Below, in pieces: positions 20,967-60,100 of a DNA stretch of 64,000 bases. Source of the DNA: Nageia nagi (lineage: Eukaryota > Plantae > Pinophyta). The notes under the pieces are model-generated. The model worked only from the letters and a program-made list of their open reading frames with translations, ran no database searches and was not told where the DNA came from. The stretch is from assembly GCA_050084985.1 (NCBI GenBank), contig JBITNC010000001.1, forward strand, positions 143,344,001-143,408,000. Reading direction: 5' to 3'. How positions within the stretch are numbered: the first letter of the stretch is position 1; every line of letters begins with the position of its first letter. Made by a program: the position numbers and the translations under genes.

Positions 20967-21032
20967 TTTAGGGTTTAGGGTATAGGGTTTAAGGTTTAGA
21001 GTATAGGGTATAAGATTTAAGGTTTAGGGTTT
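20967..21032 (+). repeat. Interstitial degenerate telomeric repeat (TTTAGGG)x9
   Basis: tttaggg tttaggg tataggg tttaagg tttagag tataggg tataaga tttaagg tttaggg ttt in exact 7-bp phase. Confidence 0.85.
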
Positions 21033-29459: not shown

Positions 29460-31604
29460 ATGTTGGTGGAGAATCGGGCTTCACAAACACAACAATCTAG
29501 AGCCAGAACATTAAAGTGTTCGAGCATTGGGTTTCATTTTGTTTTAAAAGAGATAATGCCGTCTCTTAAGAAATTGATTACATTTTCTGTTTCGCTGATG
29601 CTGTCATGGCCGTTGGTTGCCACCAAGACCTTCATCTTCAATAAGTTCAACAAATCAAGTATATTGTTGATAGAGGATGCTTTGATAAAATCTGAACAAG
29701 TTCTCACCCTTACAAATCATTCTGGGCTTTTACTTGGTCGAGCTCTATACCCTACCCCAATAACACTGAAGACAAGTAATTTTAGTAATACAGTAGTTTC
29801 TTTCAGCACTACCTTTGTGTTCTCAATTGTGAGTCCTCCTCCAGGCCCTGGTGGGCATGGGCTGGCTTTCATCATGACTCCTTCCAAGTCTCTCAATGGC
29901 GCCATGAAATCCATGTACCTTGGATTATTCAATATTACGACCAATGGACTTGAATCGAACCATTTATTTGCAGTGGAGTTCGACACACATTTGGACGTTG
30001 GATATGGGGATATCGATGACAACCATGTTGGCGTGGATCTTAACAGCCTTACGTCATTAGATTCTCAGCCTGCAGGCTATTGGACTGACGGAAAAATTCA
30101 GAAATTGAATCTAAAAAGTGGAGAGAATATGCAAGTCTGGATCGATTACGAACATTTTCGGGACCAGCTTACTGTCACTCTTGCGTTAGCCGGGATGGAG
30201 AAGCCTACCAAGCCACTGCTATCACTACGAAATTTCAATCTTTCTGGAGCTTTGACAGAAGAGATGTACGTGGGGTTTTCGTCTTCTACGGGATCCACAA
30301 ACGTTGAAAATCATTATATTCTCCGCTGGAGCTTCAGCTTGGACGGTGAGGCGCCGGTTCTTGATCTCTCCGGTCTCCCCTCTTTTATCAAAAAGAAGCC
30401 CATCACTGAATCCGGCAGATTCAAAGCGGGTATTGCTCTAGCATCCGTTATTGCCCTTATGGTCCCTGTTTTCTATCTATTCTGTTGGCTGAGGAAGCGG
30501 AGGATCAGAGAATCTATTGAGGCGTGGGAGTTGGAGTATTGGCCTCACAGGATTTCCTACAACGAGCTAGTTGCCGCCACACAAGGGTTCCGAGATGGGC
30601 AGATCGTGGGTTATGGGGGTTTCGGTCGTGTTTACAAGGGCATTCTTCCCAGAAAAGGCGTCGAAGTTGCAGTGAAATGCATCACGAAGGATTCCACGGA
30701 CGGAATGAAGGAATTTATCGCTGAAATTTCCAGTGTTGGTCGTCTCCAGCACAGGAACCTCGTCCAACTACGAGGATGGTGCAAAAAGAATAATCAGCTC
30801 TTCCTCGTCTATGATTTCATGCCAAACGGAAGCCTTGATAAGATGATATTCGGGAACCCAAAGGAAGTTCTCCCCTGGTCTCAACGCTACTCTATCCTCA
30901 AGGATATAGGGACGGGGCTCTTGTATCTTCACGAGCAATGGGATCAGAAGGTTGTTCACAGAGACGTCAAGTCCAGCAATGTGTTGCTTGATTCGGACTT
31001 CAATGCCAAGTTGGGGGATTTTGGGCTTGCTCGTCTATATGACCATACCCAAAATCCACAAACAACTCGGGTAGTTGGAACTGTCGGATATATTGCACCG
31101 GAAGTTACCAGCACAGGCAAAGTATCTTCGAGCTCTGATGCATTCAGCTTTGGGATCGTTGTACTTGAAGTTGCGTGTGGAAGAAGACCGATTGATCAAT
31201 CCAAGGGTCCGGACGAAGTTGTTCTGCTAGATTGGGTGAGGTTTTTGCATAAAAGGGGAAAACTGCTGGATTCTGTGGATCCAAATCTCAATGGAGACTA
31301 CGACACAGAGGAGGTGGAGAGAGTGCTGAAAGTGGGGCTTTATTGTTCTCATCCTCAAGCGGAATCAAGGCTTAGCATCAGAACAGCGCTACAGATACTG
31401 GAAGGGGAAGCTCCACTTCCAGGCGATGAGATCCCCTCCCCATCTCCATCGGGAATGAATTCTGAGCAATACGGCTATATTTTCCATGCAAGAGATGAGG
31501 CCGAATCATCAGTATTACAATTTGCTCCGAAGTTCGGAGATTGCGAAACCAGTTCAGCAAGCGGAGGTTATATGGAAGATTCCGATTACCAGGTAGGCAG
31601 ATAG
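29460..31604 (+). CDS. LECRK: L-type (legume) lectin-domain receptor-like Ser/Thr kinase, LecRK-S.1-like; intronless; probable true start ATG at 29556
   Basis: Intact 714-aa ORF with a signal peptide after M33, lectin motifs (SFSTTFVF, GHGLAF, AVEFDT, HVGVDLN, YVGFSSSTG), a TM helix, WELEYWPHRISY, and kinase motifs GYGGFG, VAVK, HRDVKSSN, DFG and GYIAPE. CpG is retained, unlike the flanks. Confidence 0.97.
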   Translation: MLVENRASQTQQSRARTLKCSSIGFHFVLKEIMPSLKKLITFSVSLMLSWPLVATKTFIFNKFNKSSILLIEDALIKSEQVLTLTNHSGLLLGRALYPTPITLKTSNFSNTVVSFSTTFVFSIVSPPPGPGGHGLAFIMTPSKSLNGAMKSMYLGLFNITTNGLESNHLFAVEFDTHLDVGYGDIDDNHVGVDLNSLTSLDSQPAGYWTDGKIQKLNLKSGENMQVWIDYEHFRDQLTVTLALAGMEKPTKPLLSLRNFNLSGALTEEMYVGFSSSTGSTNVENHYILRWSFSLDGEAPVLDLSGLPSFIKKKPITESGRFKAGIALASVIALMVPVFYLFCWLRKRRIRESIEAWELEYWPHRISYNELVAATQGFRDGQIVGYGGFGRVYKGILPRKGVEVAVKCITKDSTDGMKEFIAEISSVGRLQHRNLVQLRGWCKKNNQLFLVYDFMPNGSLDKMIFGNPKEVLPWSQRYSILKDIGTGLLYLHEQWDQKVVHRDVKSSNVLLDSDFNAKLGDFGLARLYDHTQNPQTTRVVGTVGYIAPEVTSTGKVSSSSDAFSFGIVVLEVACGRRPIDQSKGPDEVVLLDWVRFLHKRGKLLDSVDPNLNGDYDTEEVERVLKVGLYCSHPQAESRLSIRTALQILEGEAPLPGDEIPSPSPSGMNSEQYGYIFHARDEAESSVLQFAPKFGDCETSSASGGYMEDSDYQVGR

Positions 31605-34600
31605 GCGAATCATTAAGATAACAGATGGTTTTGTAAATGTCTCTTCTGTTTACATTCTTCTTGTACGTTAGATTTAGTTAAGCTTCAACATTCCCTTGGT
31701 TTAGGAGTTTATTAACAGTTTGATACGTTTTCCCCCTCGGCATGCAAATATTAGATGTTTTTATTTTTAAATATGTGTTTTTTTTTTTTTTAAATGTGTT
31801 TTTTTTGCATGTGTAATAGCTTTTTGCATTACTTAATTTCTGGTTTGTATTCTATACAGTTACTTTAGAGTGTTATAATTAGATTGATTGATTAGTTTCG
31901 AATTTAATAAAAAAAAGGTTAACAACATATATTTAGTTGATGTCGAATGTGAGGGAGTAATAGTCAAAGGGAGAGATGATATAAACTAAAGGAAGGTTAA
32001 TCTAGGTCTTTGTGTTCATAATTGAGTTTATCTTAATAAGTATTCAGATTTGATTGGAATCATAATTGAATTTATCTTAATAAGTATTCACAAATTTTAT
32101 TGGAATCATAAATATTGATTTTAAAAAATAAATATTTAGTAAAAATTAGATGTTAAGTTTTATTTTATATTATTTTAGATTCAAAAAAAAATTAATAAAA
32201 TTCTTAGATAAAAAAAAAGATATATATATAAGGGGAGAATAGATAATTAGTTATGGGTGCAAGTAAGAAGTTGGGTCCACTTTGAGAGGAAATGTAGAGT
32301 AAAAATTCGAGGTCAAAAATATCGAGATCCCGATATAGGTTGTCAACTAAGCCTATATTGGGATCTTGATATCTTAAAGATAGATCCCTGTCATAAGTTG
32401 TGAAGCTCATTTTTCAGCTCTGCGACCTGCAGCTCCCAACGACTGTGGAGATGACCTAGCGATTTCAGGCTCCCAATTTTGTTGCTTCCAGAGCCACCAA
32501 CTATCTCCAAATTCTCCCTACAGTGTCCCGTTAAGTGCTCCAACACATTTATTTATTTATTTTTTGTTCAAATCCACTTATTTTTCATAGTTTAGTCAAG
32601 ATAAAATAGTAGAAAGTAGGGTTTTTTTTGTTAAAATGTGTAGTTTTTTAGGAATCTTGTATAATTGTTAATTTATATATATGGTATTCAATATACCAGT
32701 AGTAACCATAGTTAGAGGTGTAAACACAATTAAATGTCAAGAATGTTTACCTTAGAATCAAAAATGTAAGTAGTGATATTGATGTTAGACTAGAAGGAGT
32801 TATAGCAATCAAAAAGGGATTGTAGGATCTCTTTCAAACCTTTCCACACTCTAAAGGCATCAACAATATAACATTTAAATCAAATAATTTCTCAAAAATA
32901 TGAGGGATTTGGTAAAAAACTTGCAACTCAAAGTATAAAAGAAAAATATAGGCATATAAACAAATGCAAAATTACTACTCAATACACTACATCTTTTTTC
33001 TTATAATATTTTTAATCATTAAATCTAAGTCTAAAATGCCTTATGAGGACTATCCTTCCTAAATCCAAAATTAACTCTATCAATCTAGGTCTAATTTACT
33101 ATTGATAAAATGTTGAAGAGCAATCACTTCTATAGGAATGCCTAGGTAGAGTCATTCAACAACAACTGTAAAAAGAATATAGTTTAAAGGAAAAGTCTTC
33201 TCATGGAGGATATTCATCAAGGTCAATGAATCATGTGTATGGGTTTATTTCTCTAACAAAATTAGAAGTGGTAATGAAGCCATTTGGATATAGGATCAAG
33301 TTTTATGTATCCAAAATAAGAGAAAATGGCTCTACCCTTTATAGGTTGCTTGTGTACCTTTGGAATGAGGTAAAATGTGTAAACTTAGGTAATGAAATTT
33401 TTTATTTTCAACAACTATTTTATCTCATTTTCGAAGATGAATGCCAAAATATAGTCAAACTAGAAAAGGTGGCTACATTTTTATCTTTCAATATGCATAA
33501 AATTTTAATAAAAAAATGAATACCAATCTTGTACATATTTCTTTAGTATATTTGGATTATCTAGGAAAAGAATAGTATACAAAGACAAGGGGTCTAACTT
33601 TAAAGGTAGAAAGAAATAAGCATGTATCTTTTATCATATTGGTTGTGCTTTAGGATAAAACTAAAATAGAAATAACACTATATCTAAAATAAGATTTTAA
33701 GGATAAATATGGTTTGAAAAATAATGGACTTAATATAGTACAATAAATATTTTAATATTTGTATATAGTAACTTTGAAAATCAAATGGTTTTCCTAGGAA
33801 TCAAAACATTTCAAACATATTATATTATTTTTTCAATAAAAATATATTAAAAAAGAGGGAATGTATAAACTAACACAAATAGAGAGATTTCTTCCACTAG
33901 ACATTTGAGCTAGATGCAAGATAAAATGTGTCTAAGCAATGCATTTCCTATTTGACATATTCTTCATAGTAAACAAGCATAGAGATATAATCATTTCCAA
34001 AGAGATCATTGATGATTTTATATTAATATTTAGGAAGGGAGATGCCTTTCACAAGGTCTAAAGAGGCTTGGTGGGTGAAGAGATAGCTAAATCCTTTAGA
34101 ATTATTGGCATAAATAAAGGGATCTAAGGGAATTATTTATAAGATTGAATAAAAATATCCAATAGCCTTATATTAGGATTTTTTAATTATGTATGAGGAT
34201 ATTAAAACTTTTCATTTGTGAAGAGAAACTTAAAAATATGAAACCATGGCTAAAATCTAATTATTTAAGCTCAAAAAATGAATAACTACTCAATATGATG
34301 AATGTTATTTTTAAATAAATTTTTGAAAAAACATAGTTGATAAATTAGACTTTCTTTCCTATTTTATACTCTTTGGGATAGCATAAATATTTTTTTAAGT
34401 TATACATACTTTTGAACTATGTTTACAATATTTTGATAATAATAGGTAGAGGATATTGAAAATATATGGATATATATTTGGTAATAATCATATATAACCC
34501 ATTAACAATGTTTCTTGCACAAACAAAGGGGATAACAAGGGATTATACAATCTTTCTTTTTAATGAGGTGGTCCTCAATAAGATTCAATCTTCTTCTTTA

Positions 34601-35848: not shown

Positions 35849-37160
35849 TCCTTATGATCATCTCCTTCAAATTCTAGCTCGATTATATTGATGTAATTCT
35901 ACACAAATTAAGGTATATCTCACTTGTAAATTTATTTATTTTTTTTCAAAACTTCAACGGTTACTCAATTTCAATCTCTTGTTTTGAATTTAAAATTTAA
36001 GATCTATACTAACATTATTTATGGTTGAGTAATGGGCTAAAATCTAACATTTTATGATAGTTACATGATTGTAGTATATATATATATAAAAGAAGGGGCT
36101 ATTTTTAATTTTTTTAAATAAATTTTTTATTTTATTTTAGAGGGATGTGGACATTTAGGGGGCCACCACCTACCCCAAGGGGGACCAACCATCCTTGGAG
36201 GTTGCAACCACCATAAGGGGAGCGAAACCCTATTGGGCCCATGTACCCTAAGGGATGACTATGCCACTTAAGGGGGATGCGTACCCATAAAGGGGATGTG
36301 AACACCCTATAAGAGGTCACTTAACCCCAAAAGGAGGTATGTGATGCCTAAGGGTTTACGTGATGCATGAGGGATTATGTAATCCTAATGTGGACCCAAC
36401 CACTTCTTAAGGGACTATGTAACCCCAAGGGGGGCATGTGCCACCCAGGGGGCTACTCAGTAAAGAAAGTAGAGCATTAACACTATAAAAATTATTTGCA
36501 CACTACCAGCACCATACATAGAACACCCATAACATTTTCAATTTTTGTACCTACATCAACAAATTGTAAGTGGATTCCAAGATCTATGCAGGTACACTAT
36601 ATTGTTTGCTAAATATAAAAAATAAAAAAAAAATCAAATACACCATGTAAATTATAGTGTATTTTATGTTTTCCATTTTTTATATTTTAATGCACTTTTT
36701 CATTTTTATAAATGCTTTGTTATGTTACTAGGTTAATAATCTTCAAGTTGTCAATAGATTTTTCTTTAAAATTTATAAAATTATATGACATGGATACTGT
36801 AAGTCTATTGGTAGGCATCCATGTCATGTGTTTCCTAGGATAGAAAAGAAAATAAAAATGCACTATGTTTCTATCTTTTATTTTAAATTATTTTAGGTAT
36901 ATGTTATGGGGTTTTAAGGTTGTTCACTTAGAAAAATATAGCCATGTTATGAATATTAAGAATTCTTGTCAAACTTGTCAATATTTTATGACTTATTAAT
37001 AATTAATTTATTTTTACATTATTGATTGCATATTATATGTTTTACAATGAGTATTGATAAATTCATTTTAATATATAATTAATAAGACTTAATTTAATCA
37101 ATAGATACATACATAAATAAAATTACACAATCATACATAACATTTTGAATAAAATGAATA

Positions 37161-37651
37161 AAATTATACTATTGTAAAATTATAATGTTATCACTCATAG
37201 CTTCCAAGAACAACAAAAAAAAAACCATAGAAATAATGTTTCAAAGTTTCAAAAAGATGTAACAACTAAATTTTCTATTGAAGAGGAAAATTTACAAATT
37301 CTCAAAAAATAGTGGTTCAAAACTAGTTTTGCCTCATACAAGGCTAATTAGTTGAACTGAATGTGAACTACTACACATATATGCATGTTTGAAAAAGTCA
37401 AAAACACTCATTCATAATAAAATAATAATATATAATTTAAATTTAATAAGATTTATAGTATTTAATATTTAAAAATATTCTTAAGAACATTAGTAAATCT
37501 TAAAACTATGAATGGAATTAAATTAGATTAAGTCTTTTCCTCATGATGAGGAATCCAAGCTTGCTTGGGTTTCTCTAGCAGATAGTGTGGAGAGAAGATA
37601 ATAAAGTATTGAAACTTATTAGTAGCAAGGTGAAGATTAGGGATTAGTGAG
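37161..37651 (-). repeat. 3' pseudo-LTR of the PLE
   Basis: Direct repeat of 47341-47863 (aaattatactatt.taaaattataatgttatcac ... aagattagggattagtga); contains the ORF 3' end. Confidence 0.9.
37315..37357 (-). ncRNA. Decayed minimal type-I hammerhead ribozyme (3' pLTR copy)
   Basis: Minus strand reads gttcaa-ctaatta-gcct-tgtatg-aggc-aaaa-ctag-tt-ttgaac. Stems I and II are intact; the CTGATGA and GAAA cores are mutated. Confidence 0.75.
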
Positions 37652-38836
37652 CCCCCAATGTTCAAGTCCATGAATGATCAACTATGGTGAAGCTTGAAAA
37701 TAAAGGGCATCTAGTTACTCCTTTTCATAGTAGGACACATATGAAGGAGTAACACTTCTTTATCTCACTAAGAAAATTTGCTAAAATAGAATCAAACAAA
37801 ACCGATGGGATAGCCTCTAGATTTCAAACATTGGTAAAAAGAGTCTCTTCATCTTACAAATATTGCTAGCTTAGATACCCAAAGTAAGTAGCATTTGATC
37901 TTAGTAATTACAAAAGAATTTTTTTAAAGAATAGGATGCCATGAGTGAAAAGGAATATATTGATAAGAATTTAATGGTTTCTAATAATGTTTAGTGTACA
38001 AAAAATCTATAGATCCAAAATCATCACCTAAAGAATGAGACATCAAGAATATCCATAGGTGAACTAGACATGCACAATGAGATTTAGATCTTTGGATAAA
38101 GGCTTTAATAGTGATCAAAGAAGCACAACAAAGACTCTTTATTACTGGACCAAACTCCAAAGGTGTCATCTATATACCTCTTAAAAATTAAGAGAGAAGA
38201 AAAATCAAAACTATCCTTAATCCATTTTTCCAAATTTCTACCCATAGTTATTCCACAGATCTATTGATAATAGGATCCATGGAATTCTAGATAATGTTAG
38301 GTAAGGATGAGCTCAACAAGATGCATAATTAGATCAATAATAGTTTGATCCAAATTGTTCATAGTTACAAACTCATAGAGAGTTGAATGGAGGGTTAAAA
38401 GATTAGTAGTTGTAGGGATATTGGGGTAAAGGGATTCCAAAACAAAGGTAAATAAAAAATAATCCAATGATAATTCATAAGAGTAAACAAAATTGAATAA
38501 GGATATAGAATTAGAGATATGATTACATTGTGAAAGAAGCATAGGAAATAATAATCTATGAACAAATAGGTCATCCTACAAGAATAGACTTGTGAAGCTT
38601 CAAAACGAGATAAAAGGCATAAGGGCAAGTTTTATTAACAAGAAGTCTTAAAAGGAAATCCTTGATAGACTTAAACAGAATGTATTTACTCACCAATTCC
38701 ATCAATTTACTCCAAAGTAGCAACCATGGTACATGGAAAATAGGGGATTAGACAACAGCATCACAAAGTTGAGGATAACCTTCATTGATATACCAATAGC
38801 GGTCTATGATGACTACACATAATTTTTTGTTAGTCA

Positions 38837-39799
38837 TGAAGATTTTGAAGAAAAATAAACTATAATGTGTATAACCAAAGCACAGTGAGGTTAACCATAG
38901 GTAGAATAAATAGCAAGATATATAAAAGACCAAAATATATTGTTTGTATTGTAAAGAAGTTAAATTTTTACAATGCTCTCTTAGAGCTAACAGGAAAAAC
39001 ATACATAGTTCTTTTAATCTAATCCTCCATTCATAGCTTACAAATAGGCTATCTAGACTTATATTAAAAATAAAATATTACATATGTGCTACTTGGTCAA
39101 AATATAATTAAATGTAGCATGGCTCCATTTTGCATAGAGTAGAGGAAGCCCATACCCTTGTATACATGATGTTTAAAACACATTAAATGGTTGTAGAAGG
39201 TAGATCAACCATTTTTTTACAAAAAAAATTAATGTCAATGTTCAAGAATTCATGTCATTAGTTGAGCATTTAATTTTGGGGTAGAAATCCCTTAAATGAA
39301 CATTTTCAAAGTGTAAATCTAGGTGTCAAAGCAAGAGGGATGTAATAGCACAATACTACTTGGGAACTTGCCTCTAAAATGGTGAAATCACTTACCAAAA
39401 ATTAAGGGGTATTATCACTACTTGCAATTCAGAAGGAAAAAATAGTTCCTCAAAATAGATAGAGCCTGAAAAAGATGTCCCAAAGAATTAACACCCAAAG
39501 AAGATGTAGTTAAATCCCAAAGTTTGAGAAGTAATAATAATGTCCAAAAAATAAATTATAGAAGCATAGTTAGTAGTTCCCAAAGCACAAGATGCCAATA
39601 GTGCCTAGGACTTGGAAGGCCTACAAATACAATAGTGCTCAAATTTCAAGAGATAAAAACTCCAATCAATAAGTCCCAGAGCATGAGGTCAATAAAGGCT
39701 AGAGAAGATGTACACTAAGGAATGGAGATAGAGCCCAGGATGGAGGAAGAGAGCCCAAATACTAAAGTAGATCCTAGAATGGAGATTAAAAAATTTTCA
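38837..39799 (-). repeat. 3' LTR of the minus-strand copia
   Basis: Direct repeat of 43937-44935. Confidence 0.9.
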
Positions 39800-42700
39800 A
39801 TTGGCCCCTTAATCTCCATGACAAAATGAGAACATTTTCTCTATTTACCAAAAAAAACACAAATACAAAGAAAAATAAAGTTAATATGTAATATAGTCAA
39901 AATTTGCCAACATTCACCCCTTGAATGTCTAGGATTTAGACTCCAAGTTGGTTCTAAATGTAGTAAAAATGATCCTTAGGCAATTGCTTAGTAAAGATTT
40001 TCTTCAACTAAATCTCTTATAAAGTGATGGCATATATCAATCTACTTTGTCGTGCTATGAAATATAGGGTTTTTGGTCATGGCAATCATGCTGAGATTGT
40101 CATAGTGCATTGAAATGGAGAGATCAATATCCATGCCCAAATATTCAAATAGATAGGCAAGCCAAATGCTTGTGTGCAAGTGGTAGAGGTAGCAATATAC
40201 TTATCTTTTGTTGATAAAAGTGTAATAGTGGGTTACTTCTTGCTACTCCATGAGACTAAAGATTCTTCAAAGAAGAATATAAACCTTGACATGCTCTTTC
40301 GACCATCAATACATTTAGTCCAATCAAAATCTATATAGGCATGTAACATTTCTTGTTCTAAGGATTTATACCAAAGCCCATATTGACATGTGCCACTCAA
40401 ATAGTGTAGGATCCATTTGGTTGCAATCCAATGTGTCTAATGTGGTGAGTGTATGAATATATCTACTTTGTTGATAGCAAACATGATTTTTGATTTGGTA
40501 GTAGTAAGATACATAAGGCTACCTATTAAGGATCAGTACATAGTGATACCAACATGTGGAAAGGATTCTTCAACAATTTGGCTTTGATAATAGTTAGTGT
40601 ATTAACAAGGCTACATCTTTGCATCTTGAAGTAGGCCTGCAAATCTTCCAAATATTTGGATTGAGTGATCAAAATTCCATTGGAGGATTGCCTTGTAGGC
40701 CAAGGAAATAATTCCTCTTTTCAAGATCACTCATCTCAAATTCACTTATAATAACATTTTTAAATTGATCTATCATAGTATCAGAGGTGCTAGTAAAAAT
40801 GATATCATCAACATACAAGTACAAAATAAAGAAGTTGCTACCTTCAACCATTATGTACAATATGCTTTCCATTGAGCATCTCTAGTAACTATTTTTCTAA
40901 AGGTAACCATTAATCCAGTGTACCATGCTCGAGGTGCTTATTTAAAGCCATAGAGAGCCTTTTTGAGTTTACACACCTCATCTACTTGATCAAGAATAAT
41001 ATATCATTCATGATGATTAACATAAATAACCTCCTTTAAATATCCATTTAAGAAAGTGGATTTGACATCCATCTGATAGATTGTTAATCCACAATGAGGT
41101 AAGTGCAAGCATAAATCTCATCGTCTCTAGCCTAGCCACTAGTGTAAAAGTCTCATCATAATCTAGCCCTTCCTTTTGAGCATATCCTTTAGCAACTACA
41201 TGGGATTTGTGCTTTGTAATACTCCCATTAGGATTATGCTTCAATTTGTAAATCCATTTAACACCAATTACCTTTTTTTCTCTAGTAGAAGGTACAAGTT
41301 CTTAGGTGTCATTCATCTAGATTTGCTCAATCTCATCTTCCATGGCTTTCTTCCACTTCCTCATTAGCAATAGCTTCAGTATATGAGGAAGGTTCAACAA
41401 ATGAAGCCATTAATGCATAAGAGATATGTATCTCTTAATTTTTAGCTTTGGTTTGTGATAAGGTAATTCTTTTATTAAGCTCTTTATCTAGCATCAATGA
41501 TGGAGGATGATAACAATCACTTATTCACTTATTCTTGGCTAGTGGAGTATAAGCACTAGGAGACTGATTTGGATATGACTACTATGGTGAGCTAGTGGAT
41601 GGTGAATATGGTGATGAAGTTTGAGGAGGAGGAGGTGCAATAGTGTGAGAAGGTTCACTATATTCATCAAAATGGAACTTAGCAATGGTGTCTTCAGCAC
41701 CATTTTCTTGATTGATTATGTCTTCTTCAAAAATCACATCTTTGTTGATGTGTATCTTACCAGTTAATGGATCATAACATATATAGGCCTTAGATGCTTT
41801 AGAGTATCCCACTAAAATACATTTGATGGATTTCTCATCAAGCTTCTTCCTATTTTCTTTTGGCACATTTACAAAAGAGGTTGAGCCAAATATTTAGAGA
41901 TGAGAAATGTTTGGCTGCACACCAAACCAAGCTTCATAAGGGGTGGTATCCTTTAAAAATTGAGTGGGACACTTATTTAAAATATAAATTGCAGCATGTA
42001 CTGCTTCACCCCAAAAACTAGTGGGATGGCCCTTTTCTTTTATCATGCATCTAGCCATCTCAATAACTATCTAGTTTTTCCATTTAGCCACTCCATTCTA
42101 CTGTGGAGTGTAGGTAGTTGTATATTGCCTAACAATATCATGCTAATGGAAGAAGTTCTTAAACTAATTTGAAATAAATTCTCCTCCTCTATAAATTTTA
42201 AACTTCTTGATAAAATAGCTAGATTATTTTTTAATAAGAGTTTTAAATTTAACAAAACTCTCAAAAGAATCTAACTTATTTTGTAGTAAATAAAGCTAGC
42301 TCATCCTAGAAAAATCATCCATAAAGATGAGCGTATATCTTGACTTACCACCTTGGTTGGGATTCTACATTAGTCCACACAAGTCTGTATGCACTAGCTG
42401 AAGTGGGTACTTGGCCCTATATTGGTGTATTTGAAACTTCACTCTGTGTTGCTTGCTTGCCATGCAACTTTCACAAACCTCACTAGGTGTATGGGAAATG
42501 GCAGGAAGGCCTCTCACCAATTTATGTAGACCATTGAATGAGTGAAAATTTAAATGAACAAATCTCCTATGCCATAACTAGGTAGAATCAATGGATGATT
42601 TTAAACAACTTACTATAGGTTTCATCTTAAGCATATACATCTTGTTTTTAGTCATATGGATGTTGGCTATAAGTTTGTTATTATCATCTTTTACAATAGT

Positions 42701-43936
42701 ACACCCTTTCCTTTTGAAGGTGGTGACATAGTCCCTTATACTAAGTTGGCCAATACTTAACAAATTATGCTTAAGGCTTGGAACAAAGAGAGTGATATGC
42801 GTATAAACTATCTTACCAGCTTTAGAATTAAAGGTAGTAGTTCCTCTACCATGGATGTTGACACTTTTGTTATCACCAAATCTAACTTGGCCTATGATAG
42901 AGGTGTCAACATTATGAAATAAGGCTTTGTTTCCAATCATGTTGTTAGAGCAACCACTATCCAAGTATCATACATCTTCTTCTTCAACTTGGAAACTACT
43001 ATAGGTGAGAAACATGCTGCTCTCAACTTGATCCTCAACATATTGAGCTTTGAGATGGGGATTCTTTTTCTAATAATGTGATTCTATGTGACCATGTTTA
43101 TTATAAAATTCAAGATATCTAAGGGTGTCATTTTGTGATCTTCCCCTAGAACAGCCTCTTCCATGACCTCTTCTACCTCTTCCATGAGAGGATGAAGAAG
43201 AACTACGAGTTGATCAAGAGGGCTCTCGACCCATTATTATCAACTATCCTTGGAAAGCTTGGTCCAAAGACTCGACTCTATCACTAATTTTATACTCATT
43301 GGTAGTTAAACTATCATGCAACTTTGCAAGCGTGAGTTGGGATAGGTACTTTGCTTCTTCAATGGAAATGTTGATGGGATCAAACCTTCTTGACAAGCTC
43401 CAAAGCACCTTTTCAACAATTATAGTGTCTTCCATCTCTTCACCGTGTGAATGAAGGGCATTTTCAAGATCTTGGATCTTGGAAAAGAAGAAACTTATAT
43501 TTTTTTCCTCTCTCATATGGAGATATTTGAACTCCTTCCTTAACATCTAGAGGTTTGCCATACGGACCTTAGCTGATCCTTTGTATGCGATCTCCAAGAT
43601 CTCCCATGCTTTCTTAGAAGTCTAACACTCTATAATTTTAGGGAAGATGGACATATCTATCCTATACTGGATGGAAAATAATGCCATGGCATCCTTCTTT
43701 TGATTCTCTAACACTTCTTTCTTCTCATCTATAGTCATGGATGCAAAGGTGACTTCATCTGAGTTGGTAAATCCCTGGGAAACAAATGTCCACAAGCCTT
43801 ATGAGATAAAAAATGTTTGCATCTGAATGCACTAGTATTCATAATGGTCTTCACTAAAAATGGGAATATACAACTATAGTGAATTTCTTTGCTTGAAATC
43901 TATTTAACCCAATAAATCTTCTGCTCTGATACCAAT

Positions 43937-44935
43937 TGAAGATTTTGAATGAAAATAAACAATAATGTGTATAGCCAAAGGATAGCGAGGTTAACCACAA
44001 GCGGAATAAACAATGAGATAAATAGGAGACCAAAATATATTATTTGTATTATAGAGAAGTACAATTTTTACAATGCTCTCTTGGAGCTAACAGGAAAAAC
44101 ATACATGATTCTTTTAATCTGCTCTTCCGTTCATAGCTTACAGATAGGCTATCTAGACTTATACTAAAAATAAAATATTACATACATGCTACTTGGTCAA
44201 AATATAATTAAATGTAGTATGGCTCCATGCATGCATTCTATCATTCTTTCTGTAGAGAGTAGAGGAAGCCCATGCCCTTGTATGCATGATGTTTGAAACA
44301 CATTACATGGTTGTAGAAGATAGATGAACCATTTTTGTACAAAAAATGTTAATGACGATGTTCAAGAATTCATGTTGGTGATTGAGCATTTAATTTTGAG
44401 GTAGAAATCTTTTAGGAGGACTTTTTTAGAGTGTAAATTTGGGTTCCAAAGTAAGAGGGATGTAATAGAGCAATAATACCTATGATCTGGGCTCTAAAAT
44501 TGTGACATCACTCACCAAAAATCGATGGGTGTTATCACTCCTCGTAACTTAGAAGGTAAAAATAATTCCTAGAATTTGTTACTGCTCGGAAAAGATAGAG
44601 CCTAGAAAAGATGTTCTAGAGAATTAACACCCAAAGAATATCTAGTTAAATCCTGAAGTTCAAGAAGTAATAATAATGCCTGGAAAACAAATCCTGAAAG
44701 CGCAAGTAGTAGTGCCCGGAGCATGAGAGGCCAATAGTGCATGGGACCAGAAAGACCTGTAGATACAATAGTGCCCAGATTTCGGGAGATAAAAACTCCA
44801 ATCAATAAATCCCAGAGTGCGGGGTAAACAGAGGCCGGAGAAGATGTACGCCAGGGAATGGAGATAGAGCCTGGGATGGAGGAAGAGAGCTCGGAGACTA
44901 TAGTGAATCCCAGAATGGAGATTAAAAATTTTTCA
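43937..44935 (-). repeat. 5' LTR of the minus-strand copia
   Basis: Adjacent to the PBS; direct repeat of 38837-39799. Confidence 0.9.
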
Positions 44936-47340
44936 AATCGGGCCGATGAAAATGGAATTATCATATGTCAAAAGCTTAAGGCTTTTCATAAGCAACCGAG
45001 GAAGGGGAGGTTTAGTAGAAAAATCACAGAAAGCTAATAATCCAAAAGTTCAAACTTGCTTATCTTGATAAAAACCTTTAATTATGGGCAAAAATCAGTA
45101 AGCTACCAGAAAGGATTAGATAAAGTAAAGGAAAATACCGAAAAAAGATCGAAGATCTCTACAGTTTGGAGTGTCAATGAGTTGGTTTGGCATGAAGAAG
45201 AAGCAAAGCCTAAGATGTATCACAAAAGCTTAAAAATCATAATGTATATCTGAAATAGACTTAGAAGAAGGCTTGGGGATGAATTTTATTCCCAAACTTA
45301 GCAACTTTTTCTCATTGTAGCTCAGTCTTCTCAAAGATAGATTATGAATCGCAAAGTTTAAGATTTGATAATCAATTTTAGAGGGAGTTTTCTTGGTAAA
45401 GAATATGAGTGAAAAGAGTGCTGAGTTAATCGCCACATCCCATCAAGTTATGTGGAAATGTGGTCGAAGGTGCCCAATGTACGTGCTTTTTTGCAAGCGC
45501 TCAGGGACGTCATGTTGAAGTTTATCCATTCGTTGAGGGTGGAATAGAATTACGTTTCATGGAGGGAGCTTATCAAGGTTGAGCATGACAATCCCTTGGA
45601 ATGGAAGAAGGCCTATGAGGAGGGTAAGAGTGGCAAATTGGATATGTTTGGTCTCGAGAAGCTAATGGACTCATATTCCGTTTGGATGATAGATGGTTGT
45701 GTAGGGAAGATAGGTTACAAGTAGAAAGAGTCCCATGAGATCTAGGAGGAGGGCGTTTCTTTCCTACATTGGATTCTCCATACACTCCAACAGATTAGAT
45801 AAGACATTAATTTGGTTGGTACTATGATCTTCCCCTTGAGCACGATGGTCCAAAGGCATTACGTGTGATATTTTGGGGAGGAGCCTCGAACAGAGCCTAT
45901 TTTTTGGCCGCCATGTAGGCGTATATGTATTCAAAGAAGGATGGCTTGTAATATCTAAATGAACATCCTTAAGTTCCTTCTAAATGGTAAAATACTTTTC
46001 CTTAAGCTTCTCATGGATGATTTGAGAAATAGACTATTCCTTGGGTAACTCGTCAGCTTCAACCATGGCTGTATCCCGAGAAGCTTGATCTGCAGATGGA
46101 GGTTGCTCCTGCACACTTTTATTTAAATCATGTTGGACGAGATAGTTATTTCATCTGATGTAAATACAATTTGGTTTCTGCAAACCAAGAAGTACAAGGT
46201 ATAGAAAAGGAGCCAATGAAAGGAAGATCTTTTACGACATTTGAAGGGATCTTGTGAAAGAAGTGATAGCACCACCAACTACAACAGCATGGTTGGTTGA
46301 TGTCTTTTCCATAGAGTCCACATAGGTTGAAAGAAAATGGGCATTGGCTTGAGATTGAATATAATCCAACTTGGAGGTCAACAAAGCCTATTCATCTGGA
46401 TCATTGATAACAATCTTAGGTGGCTTAACTTGCAAATTATTGGGTAGAGTTCTAGCCTCTTCAAAGTACTTGAGCATTAGAATATACTCAGAATATCTTT
46501 TCTCAAGTTGGTGGTAACGCTTATATTCATTAAAAGCTAAGGTGGTTAGTGAAGAAATAGATCCTAGGAATTTATCAACAAAGGATACCTGTTGATCAAA
46601 AGTCATCTAGCTGGAAAGAACGTCCAAAGGTTGAGCACCACCGATAGGAGCATCGAGCGGATGCGAAACATCAAGGAATATGTTAGTTTTATAGGTTCCT
46701 AGAGAGGGCCAATAGTGTGTACCTCAAAGGATGAAGGACTAGCAGCAACATGCGCTCTAGGACCAACAGTAGTATGAGTATTAGTAACAAAAGCGCTACA
46801 GGAAATAAACATATGACGTAGTAGTTCAGTGAGGCTTTCAAACTGAAAGGTGCAACATTCCTCAATCCATGAGAAATGATCATCATTTTGAGCCTCTAGG
46901 CTTGTAAAGCAAGCTTCATGAAGAGTAATATGATAATTTGTAAATTTTTGAAGATCTATGAATCCTTTTCGAAAAGTTTAAAATTCAAAGTTGATAAGAC
47001 CAAACGCTTGAATAGTCATTCTTGAAGAATCAACACGAGGAGCATTCAAAGGAGAAGAATGGTTATGATGTTCTGAAGGTGAAGTAATTCCAACGGGACA
47101 TATAACCATAGCCATCGTGTAATAAGAAACTCCACATCAGTCTATATCTGTGCGAAGGCACTTACGCAAAAACGAAGTAGAGAAAGGGAGTTCATCCTCG
47201 ACATGGAGAGGTGCAGTAAAAAATGGTGGATTGTGATTAATAAATTATTCTAGTCCATCAGTCGACAAAGGAGCACATCCATATGGAAGAGAAGCCAAAC
47301 CTTGCAAGTTTATGTTGGTGGCCATATTTAAGGAGAACAA

Positions 47341-47863
47341 AAATTATACTATTATAAAATTATAATGTTATCACGAGCAGCTTCCAAGAACAAACAAAAA
47401 AAAGTATAGAAAAAAGTTTCAAAGTCTCAAAAAGTTGCAATAAATAAATTTTATATTGGAGAAGAAACTTTACAAATTCTTAAAAATTAGTGGTTCAAAA
47501 CTAGTTTTGCCTAATACAAGGCTCATCAATTGAACTGAATCAAAATTGATACACATATAAACTCTTAAATATAAAGAATAATGTTTGAAAAAGTCAAAAC
47601 ACTCATTTACAATAAAATAATAATAATCATCAAAAAATGACTAATATCATTTAAATTTAATAATATTTATAGTATTTAAGATTTAAAAACATTCTTAAGA
47701 ATATTAATAAATTTAAAACTATGAATCAAATTAAATAAGATTAAGTCTATTCTTCATGAGGAGGAAGCTAAGCTTGCTTGGTTTTCTTTAATAGATAGTG
47801 GGATGAGGTAAATAATGAAGTATTTGAATGTGTTAGTAGTGATGATAAAGATTAGGGATTAGT
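47341..47863 (-). repeat. 5' pseudo-LTR of the PLE
   Basis: Direct repeat of 37161-37651; the ORF ATG lies 15 bp beyond it. Confidence 0.9.
47493..47535 (-). ncRNA. Decayed minimal type-I hammerhead ribozyme (5' pLTR copy)
   Basis: Minus strand reads gttcaa-ttgatga-gcct-tgtatt-aggc-aaaa-ctag-tt-ttgaac. This is stem I / (C>T)TGATGA / stem II / (G>A)AAA / palindromic stem III / GUH / stem I. Confidence 0.82.
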
Positions 47864-50340
47864 GATTAGTGAAATATATCTATACAAAGTCTCATGAGTG
47901 GTTACCCTTGCTACCGCTCTTACTATCTACCTTACAACTCTTGGAAGCCTCACTATCTAAAGACATGCCCAAGGACCTTGATATACCACTAGCTATGATT
48001 CCATGGGTTTCCAAGAGTGTCTTAGCCTTCCTATATTTGTCCTTGAGATCCTCTATCTCTTAGTGCAGTTGTTGATTTAACTCCATCTGCTTGGATGTAA
48101 ATGCCCAAGAATCATTAGGAGGTGGTATGGTTGACTGCTTCTCCATCCTCTTATTAACCTTATCAAGGATAATAATATAAGCATCCCTTGTAGGTAATGT
48201 AGCTTGTATCTCACTAACACTTCTCCTAAAACTAGCCACCTTGGTCTCTATGGGCTTCAATCTATCAACTTTAGCCTTAAAAGGTTGAAGGATGGCAATA
48301 TCCTCCTTAAATGTAGCTATCCTAACTATTGTATCCTCTATAAATATAATAAAAATTAACATTAATACATAAGCAAATAAAATAAACATGAAAAATATAA
48401 CAAATAAAGTTTAACTTAAACTTAAAAATTATACTTGAAGGGACTAATGGGATGGGCTCTATAAGCAGGTCTATCCCAGCTACATAGGTCCTTGAAGTTG
48501 GGGGCATCTGAGGGGGTGGCTTGTCAAGCACTATATCGATGTCCTCCTCATCATTATCATTAGATGACTCCTTGGTAGATACCTCCATACCTTCCTCCTT
48601 GCCTAACATGAGAATCCCAAGTGGGAAAGGTATGATTCCTGCACACCATACCTCATATCTTGGAATAATATTGAGGGAAAATAAGATGGCTAATGGACCA
48701 TCTACCTTAGCTGGCTTCCCCATATGCTACTCTACATGGGTGTCACTAATGCATCCTAAGGTGCATCAACCTTATATCTCTACCTCAAATACAATCTTAG
48801 TCTAGCAACTGATGTAACATTCATCTAAGATAATATGGCTCCACACCCTACCACCATGTCTATAGGAAGAAGTGCTATCTCACTTAGGAAGTTTGATGTG
48901 CATCCTCATCCCACACATAGTATTGATAGGCTAACCACTCAATATCATTATCTTGAATTCCATTTATCTCTCTCCTTTGTACCTTGATAGTGTATGGTAC
49001 CCAAAAATAACCTAAATTGAACACCCAATAATACATAATGGGATAGATATTATCATTTTTCTTCCTTGCTAGTGCAACCAACTTGAATATAACAATGTGC
49101 TTATATTCCCACACTTGTAGGAAAGAAGCATGGGCCACCATCACATTTGACTTACCCATGAACAACACATGGTGCAAGTCATAATACAACTGAGCAAGAA
49201 TGTAGGATCCCCAAGCATATGATATTCTCCTAGCATAAATATCCCTAACAATCCATACTAATCTAAGAGCAAAAATAGAGTTATTCTTATTTGAGCACAA
49301 GAACATGATAATAATGGATGTAACAAGCAACTGAAGGGTTCTAAATCCTAGATCATACTGGTAGATTGAATGCCATAGGAAGCTTGGTATTCCTAATCTA
49401 TTAGAATTTCTAATGCATTATTTTTTGGTATAAAAAATGTAACTCACTTAATTTATCTAAATACTAAAAAGTATTTATAAATATCTTTTAGTATTTATGG
49501 AATTAAATAAGTACAACTTGATCATTCTTACCTCATGTAAACCTTGGGTAAAAAGGTGAGTTAAGGTGGGGTTCCCTCCTATAAATAGAAGGCTTGGCCT
49601 TATTGTTACATACTTTGTAGGTTTATAGGATGAAAGAGAGGTTGTAGTCATTACAAGAATTATCTTTGAGAAGTAAATATCTTGAGTTAAAGTGGCGTAC
49701 TCTAATCCTTGAGAGGAACCACTATACATGCTAGTATTACTGTATGAATGTGACTGTGTTTGTGTTGTTATTGTGTGAGTTTTATTGTGGTTATGAAGAG
49801 GATGCTTCAAGGTTGATCTTGGGTAAAAGAGATTCTCCTCCTTTCAATTGGTATTAGAGTCTTCCTTGGAGGATATTTCCACTACATTTTATGAGGTAAT
49901 ATCTTTAGTAGGTATACCTCCTCCCCCTTCTCATATTTGAGTTATTTTGTATTACTATTATAATTATTATGTTAGTTCATTCTTTTTTAATAATTACTTC
50001 AAAATAACAATATTATATTGTTATAATTTTGTAGCATTAATTTGATGAAGTATAAATTATATGTATATATATTTTCTTTACAAATTATATATATTTATCA
50101 TATTTTGTAAGAAAATATATATAATTTGATGAATTTCTATAGAACATTTGCTCAAAATAACATTTTTTTTATGCTAACATTTTATGTTAGTTTTCATTTT
50201 TTGGAAAACATGCTTAATTTTCTATTCATAAATTCTTAATTTTTTGAAAAAAAAAGAGGAGTGAAAGTTCTACAATTATTTTATATGTATTCAAAATGAA
50301 TTTGTTTTCTTTAAAAAAATGTTTTTTTATTTTTTTCTTT

Positions 50341-57100: not shown

Positions 57101-60100
57101 GTTAAAATGGTTAAGTAGTTGAGCCTTATCTAGGATCTATTACTTCTCAAAATGTAAAGTTCTTATCTTTGATTGTATCTATTATGGAGGAAAACTCTCT
57201 TATAATCTCTCTATCTATCTTATCTACTCTCAATCTAATATTGCATTAACAGGGAGTGTTAGAATTTGTAATGCATTATTTTTTGGTATCTAAAATGTAA
57301 CTCACTCACTTAATTCATCTAAATACTAAACATTATTTATAAATACCTTTTAGTATTTAGAGAATTAAATAAATGTAACTTGACAATCCTTACCTCATAT
57401 AAACCTTGGGTAAAAAGGTGAGTTAAGGTGGGTTTCTCTCTTATAAATAGAGGTGTTATCTTTGTTGTTATACACACTTGAATAAAGCAAAGTTATGTTA
57501 ATACTTTATAGGTTGATAGGATGAGAGAGAGGTTGTAATCATTGTAAGAATTATCATTGAGAAGGAAAAATCTTTAGTTAAAGTGGAGTACTCTCATGCT
57601 TAAGAGCTCTAGTGTAAGTTTCATTATGGTTAAGAAGAGGATACTTCAAGGTTGATATTTGTAAATGAGATTCTTCTCCTTTAATAGTCATGGTTCTCAT
57701 TGGTTGTTAACTAGGAAAATAGTCCCTCCCTCTTCTATTGGTTGTAAATGGAAGTATGTGATACCAACTTCCCTCAAATAGGAATTTTCCAAATCCTATA
57801 AACATCTAAGAGGATAACTATCATCTCGCAAATAGGAGATGGAATGTGTTGGCATCAGGATCCCAACACTCTACTAATACTATCAATAGGGAAAATTAAA
57901 GCTATACATTATAGAATCTCATTATCTTGATTGGATCTAATCCAACCTCAAGATCTATCTAAAGAATTCAACTTCATGGACCACCTCAAATTAAATGATT
58001 TTGATTCTATGAATAGCATTAAAATAACATAATTAGTTTGATATCATATAATATATATAGAAATAAATGCAAAAATCAATAAATAATATCTATATTAATT
58101 CAAAAATATCGTAAATTAATTTCTTCTCCCTTTCCATATTAGAAAACAAAATCGATGGGTCGGGGAAAAGTGACTCAATTAATCCCTTTTCTTTTTAAAT
58201 GGAGAAAAAAATGATAGATACTAGGGGCATATAATCCAAACATAAAGTAATTAAAACTATTAATCCCTATGGTATAAAGTTAAATGTAATTAAACAAATA
58301 GGGAATGATTTGGAAAAAAACCCCTCCCCCATGCTTTCATTAAAATGAATGGATTACATAAAACTTGGGTTTAAAAATAAAATATATTTTATAAAAATTA
58401 AAATCAAATAAACATTCCTCCCTTAGTTTGGTGTGTTTTTCATAGGTACAAATGGGGGTACCCTAGGTTTTATTTAAAAGATATATACATGCAAAAAAAA
58501 AAAGAAAAACAAAGTGATACTATAAAATAAGTAATCACCACATGGTGAGTTGGTAAAGTTTGAATATACTTAGCCACATGATTGTATCTCCTAGCCAATG
58601 GTCCTTTTATACCTAATTGATATGTCATATCATTCAAAAATTTGTAAATTAAATGGTTAAGAGGCAATTTGTGGGGCCCATGTCTCCAATCACATGACAA
58701 GAAAATGATCATAGAGAGTGCACAATCAATAGATAGGTAAGAGTTGGTAGGGTGAAAATGATCTAGGAAAGAAAGAATAAAAATAGTGAAAATAACATGT
58801 TGCTTTTCCTTTTTATTGATTTTGATCTCAAACCCTAGGAATACAACTCATTTAAATTTTCAAAATGGATGCAAGTAAATTTCAATTTAACATTTTTCTA
58901 AGTTTTAAAATATAGTATATTTGTCTAATTTTTAAAAAAAAATTAATTTTGCAAATTTCAAAGTGTCCATGCCCTTAGATTACATGATATTTTAAGTTAA
59001 AAGGGAAAATAATTATTTTCACATATATTTATTTGAAAATGCCATTATTTTACAAATATGCCCTCTGCTGATGATCATAATCAAATTTATAAAAGGCAAC
59101 TTTTGCTAATTCTATGAAAATTAAAGCATTAGCGATGTGCCACTATTATCTTTAGGGTGCTAATGTTATAAAATCTATATGAATTTTAATTACAAAATCT
59201 ATGTTATTTGATGAATTAATGCCATTAACTTTTTAAAATATGGTATACGATGTTGACATTGGATATGTTTATATCATGACTACTTTTTCACAAGAATACA
59301 TCTTGTACTAATGATATTTAAAGGTTTTAAGCCATGGCAATCCCATGAATACAATTCTCAAAATTGTAGGTCAATGTAATTGTAGTTTTCCTCTTACAAT
59401 ATTGGGGCATATCATTACCTCATCAACTTGATATTCATATTCTATGAGTTGCAATGAAAATGGTCTACCAAAAAATGTTATATTAATTTTATCCTTGCTC
59501 TTTACTTTTAATATTTTTATTATGATATGATTTATGTGGATATTATATCCTTTATTTCCACATATCATCCTAAAGATTAAGACCTCTATGGTACCTAGTA
59601 CATCACTCTACACATAGGATGCCATTTGGCTTAATTACCCTATAAAAGAAAATGTGAGAGGTATTCCACAACCAAAAGAGAGAAAATGAGATTACATACT
59701 AAACATACAGATTATGAAAGGTAAGTTCAGTTTGATTCTAAAAATTGTTTTTTTCTCTCAAAACTTCTTTAGATTATGTAATGTCACTACTTTTCATTTC
59801 ATATACAAAGAGGGGCAAAATGTAAACATCTAGAAGTGATTTATTATTTATTTAATAAATCATTATATTAGACTTCTTTACATATTAAACGTAATATTAT
59901 ATATATCAAGATAAAAGTTGATATTATAATGTAATGCCATGCATTATATTAAATGCAATATCATTTACCTTGGATCATATTTTAAAGTATCTTGAATACA
60001 ATAGAGATTATATTATTACTATAAGTCATCTTCCACTCCTTTCTATTTCCTTAAAGGTTATGCTATGAGCTTTATTACATGTCATGTTTTGTATAAAATA

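Follow-up and report, generated by a model that had tools for sequence, protein, structure and literature searches.

Two short motifs on the minus strand of the window (the whole 64-kb stretch of DNA that was analysed), one in each of a pair of direct repeats, are very probably the inactivated relics of a type-I hammerhead ribozyme located in the 3' UTR of endonuclease-less Penelope-like elements (PLEs) of a plant lineage. The motifs are homologous to intact hammerheads of related elements and occupy the matching position, a PLE reverse transcriptase (RT) lies between the repeats, the repeats form a partial tandem, and core bases that are invariant among the relatives have been lost. The two motifs are:

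47493..47535, minus strand: hammerhead relic of type-I topology in the 5' repeat, with C3>U and G12>A in the core, 2 mismatches to our descriptor
37315..37357, minus strand: hammerhead relic of the 3' repeat, with G5>A, G8>U and G12>A in the core, 3 mismatches to our descriptor

The 5'-repeat motif (minus strand 47535-47493, 43 nt) reads GTTCAA TTGATGA GCCT TGTATT AGGC AAAA CTAG TT TTGAAC, and the 3'-repeat motif (minus strand 37357-37315, 43 nt) reads GTTCAA CTAATTA GCCT TGTATG AGGC AAAA CTAG TT TTGAAC. Both have the type-I layout, in which helix I is open while II and III are closed, and the same order of parts: helix I, the position of the CUGANGA box, helix II with a 6-nt loop, the position of the GAA box and then, in the 3' half, A15.1-C15.2, a 2-nt loop, G16.2-U16.1, H17 = U and the return strand of helix I. 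All 6 bp of helix I and all 4 bp of helix II (from G10.1-C11.1) are perfectly paired in both motifs, each of which contains GCCT/AGGC in helix II and the ACTAGT palindrome of helix III plus loop; the 10-nt palindrome around helix III is AAACTAGTTT. The core (C3 U4 G5 A6 N7 G8 A9 / G12 A13 A14 / A15.1-U16.1 / H17) is incomplete in both, and position 12 is A in both (AAAA, versus GAAA). The sequences read exactly as given, at the same coordinates, in a preliminary description of this DNA, and the perfect stems I and II and palindromic stem III reported there are seen in both copies. Its statement that merging the copies restores CTGATGA holds, but GAAA is not regained, since AAAA stands in both.

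The host element and its reverse transcriptase

The element that carries the motifs can be followed over more than the two repeats, P0001 being its best protein match (see below):

47340..47871, minus strand: 5' pseudo-LTR, a 5'-truncated upstream copy with the last ~40 ORF codons, the 3' UTR with the hammerhead and a ~155-nt tail
45437..47339, minus strand: 5' region of the full-length unit, in which amino acids 26-85 of a Ginkgo relative (P0002) match 46150-45971
44939..45436, minus strand: N-terminal part of the PLE RT ORF, matching P0001 aa 1-173 (tblastn), with the motif NLS..LS..E..LL..G..F.P
38837..44936, minus strand: nested Ty1/copia LTR retrotransposon with gag, protease, integrase and RT pieces, splitting the PLE ORF
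37528..38843, minus strand: remainder of the PLE RT ORF, matching P0001 aa 171-600 (at 38843-37633) and ending in a short tail
37160..37650, minus strand: 3' pseudo-LTR, the true 3' end of the full-length unit and a direct repeat of the 5' pseudo-LTR

The locus is thus one full-length unit (47339-37160, minus strand, ~4.1 kb without the copia element) behind a 5'-truncated partial copy (47871-47340), which is the partial-tandem pseudo-LTR arrangement of PLEs. Because the partial copy precedes the full-length unit, the 3' end with its hammerhead is present twice, as pseudo-LTRs. As direct repeats (37160-37650 and 47340-47865), these are 86% identical over 487 aligned bases (K2P 0.153; 38 transitions and 29 transversions), the 3' repeat starting within the last ~40 codons of the PLE ORF, and low-stringency blastn within the window found no further copies of the repeats or of the 5' region. 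An imperfect, hairpin-forming palindrome of ~85 nt lies upstream of the hammerhead in each pseudo-LTR (47655-47736 and 37440-37524). The colinear match to P0001 breaks exactly at the copia insertion, whose LTRs (38837-39800 and 43937-44936) are ~80% identical, with a tRNA-Met-type primer site just after the 5' LTR; despite this identity, the numbers of CpG in the two copia LTRs are 14 and 0.

Frameshifts near 38567 and 38028, along with several stops, disrupt the remainder of the RT ORF; its reading frame extends to ~37528, with no GIY-YIG or other domain after it. A Pfam search with ten stop-to-stop ORF pieces gave no match, the pieces being too short. When a 92-aa piece (38575-38300) was compared by phmmer with 1.84 billion representatives, 12 proteins were found, the best being P0001 (604 aa, E 7e-14). 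The relatives of P0001, all uncharacterized, come from Cryptomeria japonica (59-66% identical), Ginkgo (53%), Selaginella moellendorffii (44-46%; LOC112343723) and Closterium (34-37%), and also include many metagenome sequences. The domain set of this family is DUF8422 / HTH_animal / RVT_1, and its consensus contains the N-terminal LS..E..LL..G..F.P, ADKN, FY.LPKIHK, FDVESLYPSIP, GTAMGS and RYIDD, which we take to be PLE motifs. RT followed by GIY-YIG is the canonical PLE architecture, and a family member of this build (P0097, 811 aa) matches P0001 at E 9e-67, while the nearest relatives of P0001 are 489-658 aa long and do not contain PF01541. Rotifera, Chordata and Arthropoda are the main sources of the nearest protein-atlas clusters, and a PDB sequence search with P0001 returned no match. 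Judged from these comparisons, the RT between the repeats is of PLE type, a placement made by motifs and homology, and the host element is a decayed PLE of a plant lineage, like the endonuclease-deficient Athena/Coprina type in lacking GIY-YIG. A second, shorter dead PLE RT fragment (32742-33414, minus strand) matches P0001 aa 234-461 with 32-51% identity; neither a hammerhead nor a repeat was found near it.

Intact hammerheads in related loci and decay of the core

Related loci, 80 in number, were taken from metagenome contigs scanned with the family protein alignment. Of these, 14 contain an intact hammerhead by a strict descriptor, in every case on the ORF strand; that of the closest DNA relative (L001) reads TATCA CTGATGA GCCC GATCTT GGGC GAAA CTAG TT TGATG and is position-for-position like the window motif. 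A covariance model (R1) was built from four clean intact hammerheads of related PLEs, without window sequence, and was restricted to these four because a MAFFT alignment of nine diverse hammerheads misaligned the variants with a long helix II. In the related loci, R1 gave 57 matches in ~50 of the 80, every one on the ORF strand, and all 57 were used for a second model (R2), again without window sequence. Loci with two R1 matches each include L064, L076, L059, L005 and L019, and in L064 and L076 the two flank the ORF. In 38 loci, the distance from the stop codon to the start of the hammerhead ranges from -24 to 1273 nt, with a median of 319 nt; in the window it is ~171 nt.

In the alignment of the relatives 92% of cells are paired and 9 of 11 pairs have compensatory changes. 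None of 500 shuffles reached the observed structure score, and slid controls also came nowhere near it: the hammerhead structure of the relatives is under real constraint. Among 35 distinct sequences, there is no variation at C3, U4, A6, G8, A9, G10.1-C11.1, A13, A14, A15.1 and U16.1; 33 have G5 and 34 have G12. In each of the 35, helix III and its loop form a palindrome, and 7 distinct palindromes occur; a palindromic helix III is what is predicted if helix III forms between two motifs (PMC4209133).

With filters off, R1 scored the 5' site of the 64-kb window at 36.3 bits (E 4e-10) and the 3' site at 27.5 bits (E 6e-7), the next-best match reaching 14 bits; with R2 the values were 35.3 bits (E 6e-9), 27.6 bits (E 2e-6) and 10.4 bits, respectively. 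The E-values are rough, coming from a short calibration, and the score gap is large. Both sites thus rank first and second in the 64-kb window by the covariance models, and we take the homology of both motifs to intact PLE hammerheads as established. Run in the same way, neither model found a credible third hammerhead beside the RT fragment at 33414-32742 or beside a telomere array at ~21000. Models of intact relatives and a PLE-type RT between the repeats therefore agree with the earlier reading of a decayed hammerhead in both PLE terminal repeats. The claim that the hammerhead backs the PLE assignment independently is also sound: the pair confirms on its own account that the remains around it are those of a PLE. 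Since most PLE clades are known for their hammerheads, a decayed pair in a dead copy adds little alone.

Four of the five core deviations are transitions at CG or CWG sites, in the direction of methyl-C deamination, the fifth (G8>U) being a transversion. C3 and G5 correspond to the two cytosines of a CTG/CAG site, and G12, following C11.1, lies in a CpG. The transitions noted earlier in the core of the 5' copy were accordingly recognized as such, C3>U and G12>A lying in CTG and CG contexts, both of which are scarce in the window. Its GC content is 31%, CpG observed/expected is 0.21 and CAG/CTG observed/expected is 0.33-0.35, and the pseudo-LTRs retain 1 and 0 CpG in ~500 nt. This base composition indicates very strong CG and CHG deamination decay in the host gymnosperm genome. 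The relic pair shows why a hammerhead core decays fast under CG and CHG methylation, the CUG of CUGAUGA and C11.1-G12 both being targets.

The A12 common to both motifs reflects either parallel CpG decay or a state present at insertion, and with G12 found in neither copy an intact core at insertion is presumed. If A12 was already in the template, the inserted copy would have been ribozyme-dead, a relic at the time of transposition. This is a possibility we hold to be rather unlikely, though far from negligible: A12 in both motifs would require one event instead of two, but G12 sits in a CpG, nearly all CpGs are gone from both repeats and the ratio for the window is as low as given above. Moreover, G12, conserved in all but one of the distinct relatives, has in that single exception (L066) undergone a CpG>CpA change independent of the window.

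Tandem origin and telomere-like repeats

The 5' copy opens with the heptamers CACTAAT CACTAAT CCCTAAT (47871-47851, minus strand), and the 3' pseudo-LTR opens with CACTAAT CCCTAAT (37649-37636, minus strand), inside the C-terminal codons of the ORF. The truncated 5' copy therefore starts exactly at the heptamer block, with one extra CACTAAT compared with the 3' repeat. In L001 (~2180-2200) the corresponding codons are two perfect CCCTAAA units, and the in-ORF heptamers may be a built-in telomere seed or a stop point of cDNA synthesis. Arrays of (CCCTAA)n or (CCCTAAA)n occur in more than 25 relatives, the ORF-sense strand invariably bearing the C-strand, and in the loci checked these repeats lie ~160 to 1,300 nt past the hammerhead, not adjoining it. 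At the ends of the window copy, which is interstitial, there is no telomere array, only the degenerate CACTAAT/CCCTAAT heptamers. Mixed (CCCTAA)n and (CCCTAAA)n arrays around endonuclease-less PLE units were observed in L008, L009, L030, L032 and L066, among others. The window itself contains an interstitial telomere array (20967-21029, minus strand) of about nine CCCTAAA units, some of them degenerate, with no PLE RT beside it; a weak R1 match (21350-21314, 10.8 bits, E 0.56) lies ~285 nt upstream of this array.

We consider it somewhat doubtful, at perhaps one chance in a few, that the repeats, instead of being pseudo-LTRs from a single insertion, mark the ends of two retrotransposition events that occurred separately and were stacked head to tail, as happens with endonuclease-less PLEs at chromosome ends. 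Many relatives do stand in chains between C-strand telomere repeats on the ORF-sense strand, and the start of the 5' copy at a telomere-like block with one extra unit would fit such stacking, but the junction of the partial copy with the full unit (47340) has no telomere repeat, and partial tandems from one integration are the usual PLE structure (PMC8557442). Were the events stacked, the 14% divergence of the repeats would not date one insertion, and the hammerhead reading would be unaffected.

More tentatively, gymnosperms might hold an old and possibly still active lineage of endonuclease-less, telomere-attaching PLEs, in which a dimer-type hammerhead and an in-ORF telomere seed cooperate; we regard this as a speculative option. 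If it is true, truncation at the seed would fit cDNA synthesis that stops there and leaves a telomere-like 3' end. Some copies may be alive, given the intact ORFs in Cryptomeria and in a Logan assembly. In the literature searched, the only PLEs of seed plants are the horizontally acquired, endonuclease-bearing (EN+) Dryad elements, and an endonuclease-less telomere-attaching lineage is not described there (PMC8557442, PMC10473749). Such a lineage, with hammerheads and telomere repeats in gymnosperms, would be of wider interest for transposon and telomere biologists.

Activity, chance resemblance and known systems

Two hammerheads would fold in any transcript of a live element that spans both repeats. 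Helix III of each, 2 bp with a 2-nt palindromic loop, would not close in a monomer and would instead pair between the motifs, giving a dimer; if each repeat were then cleaved after H17, unit-length RNA with 5'-OH and 2',3'-cyclic phosphate ends would be released, and this RNA, perhaps circularised, would be the template of the RT. For the element we infer self-cleavage, the use of dimers and a part in RNA processing, along the lines of a published PLE hypothesis in which cleavage at the hammerheads of both repeats yields a unit-length, possibly circular template RNA (PMC4209133). Another proposed role of the hammerhead, in endonuclease-less PLEs, is the shaping of a 3' end able to anneal to telomeric overhangs (PMC6431247, PMC8557442).

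In the hammerhead reaction G12 acts as general base and the 2'-OH of G8 as general acid (PMC6155905). Because neither copy has G12, both window hammerheads should be catalytically dead now, and each has additional core loss, with U3 opposite G8 in the 5' copy and G5 and G8 lost in the 3' copy. That one or both motifs still cleave as tolerated core variants is very improbable. A U3-A8 covariant core does exist in Schistosoma PLE hammerheads (PMC4209133), but in the window U3 faces G8 and, in the 3' copy, C3 faces U8, neither change being compensated. The uncompensated changes together with the missing G12, to which the 3' copy adds the missing G5, rule against a still-active variant core, and the ORF is dead, so there is no selection for function.

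Chance hammerhead look-alikes in AT-rich repeat DNA are less probable still, to the point of being negligible. Our own type-I descriptor, allowing up to 3 core mismatches, found only these two sites on both strands of the 64-kb window, where first-order Markov simulation (n=60, a rough estimate) gives expectations, per 64 kb, of 0.03 matches when up to two mismatches are tolerated and 0.22 when up to three are. The latter figure leaves some room for chance, as do the fold z-scores of the motifs, unremarkable at -1.4 and -2.3, which is expected because the motif is so small. Rfam was likewise silent: no hammerhead family was found in the whole window at gathering threshold, and searches of 151-nt stretches around each site with E up to 10 gave chance sRNA/snoRNA matches and no hammerhead. 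This silence weighs little because the intact relatives also fall below gathering, their best Rfam match being Hammerhead_HH9 (RF02275) with 32.5 and 28.5 bits versus a gathering threshold of 52. Against chance stand the family models, with E-values of ~1e-9 and ~1e-6 for the two sites and a top site >20 bits above the best background match, and the features that the motifs share with the intact relatives, namely strand, distance from the stop codon, helix lengths, G10.1-C11.1 and the ACUAGU palindrome. In our view the family-model scores and shared features together rule out chance resemblance. The relics are thus invisible to Rfam and also, as the preliminary description had anticipated, to exact-motif searches; family-specific covariance models found them, and such models can recover ribozyme relics that those two approaches overlook.

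In Selaginella moellendorffii, the pseudo-LTRs of PLEs lacking an endonuclease contain canonical type-I hammerheads (Cervera and De la Pena 2014, PMC4209133). Compared by description, both these and the window hammerheads lie within the terminal repeats of a PLE without endonuclease and have type-I topology, with 6 bp in helix I, 4 bp in helix II and a helix III that is short and palindromic; the window differs in its gymnosperm host, in the loss of core bases from both copies and in an outer extension of helix I that is not evident. This extension, present in the relatives L001 and L008, was absent when 81-nt window contexts were folded. The helix lengths and core of Rfam HH9 are also like those of the intact relatives, which score below its gathering threshold, the window copies being unmatched. 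The minimal hammerheads of metazoan EN+ PLEs (Penelope, Poseidon, Neptune, Cercyon) share the pseudo-LTR position and a palindromic helix III that implies dimers, but differ from the window in a helix II of 6-8 bp, a shorter helix I, an extra base before stem II and the frequent absence of helix III, and their elements encode a GIY-YIG endonuclease (PMC4209133). The 'minimal' type invoked earlier for PLE terminal repeats therefore does not apply to the window motifs, their build being the canonical type-I one of the endonuclease-less plant lineage.

Endonuclease-less PLEs of rotifers, as described in a 2017 study summarised in PMC6431247 and PMC8557442, resemble the window family in that there is no endonuclease, the hammerhead is near the 3' end and many relatives have C-strand telomere repeats on the sense strand. 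In the rotifer elements, the reverse-complement telomere repeats are immediately downstream of the hammerhead, whereas in the relatives of the window element they are ~160-1,300 nt downstream. Dryad, a conifer EN+ PLE gained by horizontal transfer (Lin et al. 2016, cited in PMC8557442 and PMC10473749), is alike in being a PLE of gymnosperms, but belongs to the Penelope/Poseidon clade and has a C-terminal GIY-YIG (PMC8557442), while the window ORF and its nearest relatives are without endonuclease. Identity with Dryad was rejected, as there is no C-terminal GIY-YIG in the window ORF. Finally, a plant retrozyme or other non-autonomous hammerhead element as the source of the motifs, instead of a PLE, is hardly credible: plant retrozymes do bear hammerheads in direct terminal repeats (PMC4918200, PMC6155905), but those hammerheads are of type III and the elements are non-coding, whereas the window motifs are of type I and their repeats enclose a coding RT of PLE type that extends into the 3' one.

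Elsewhere in the window, a further pair of direct repeats (49401-49715 and 57259-57606), 79% identical and 7.9 kb apart, probably represents the LTRs of another retroelement. The only intact gene, a lectin receptor kinase (29460-31604), points to a gymnosperm host that is close to neither Taxus, Cryptomeria nor Ginkgo, its protein being 64% identical to one of Taxus and 63% identical to proteins of Cryptomeria and Ginkgo.
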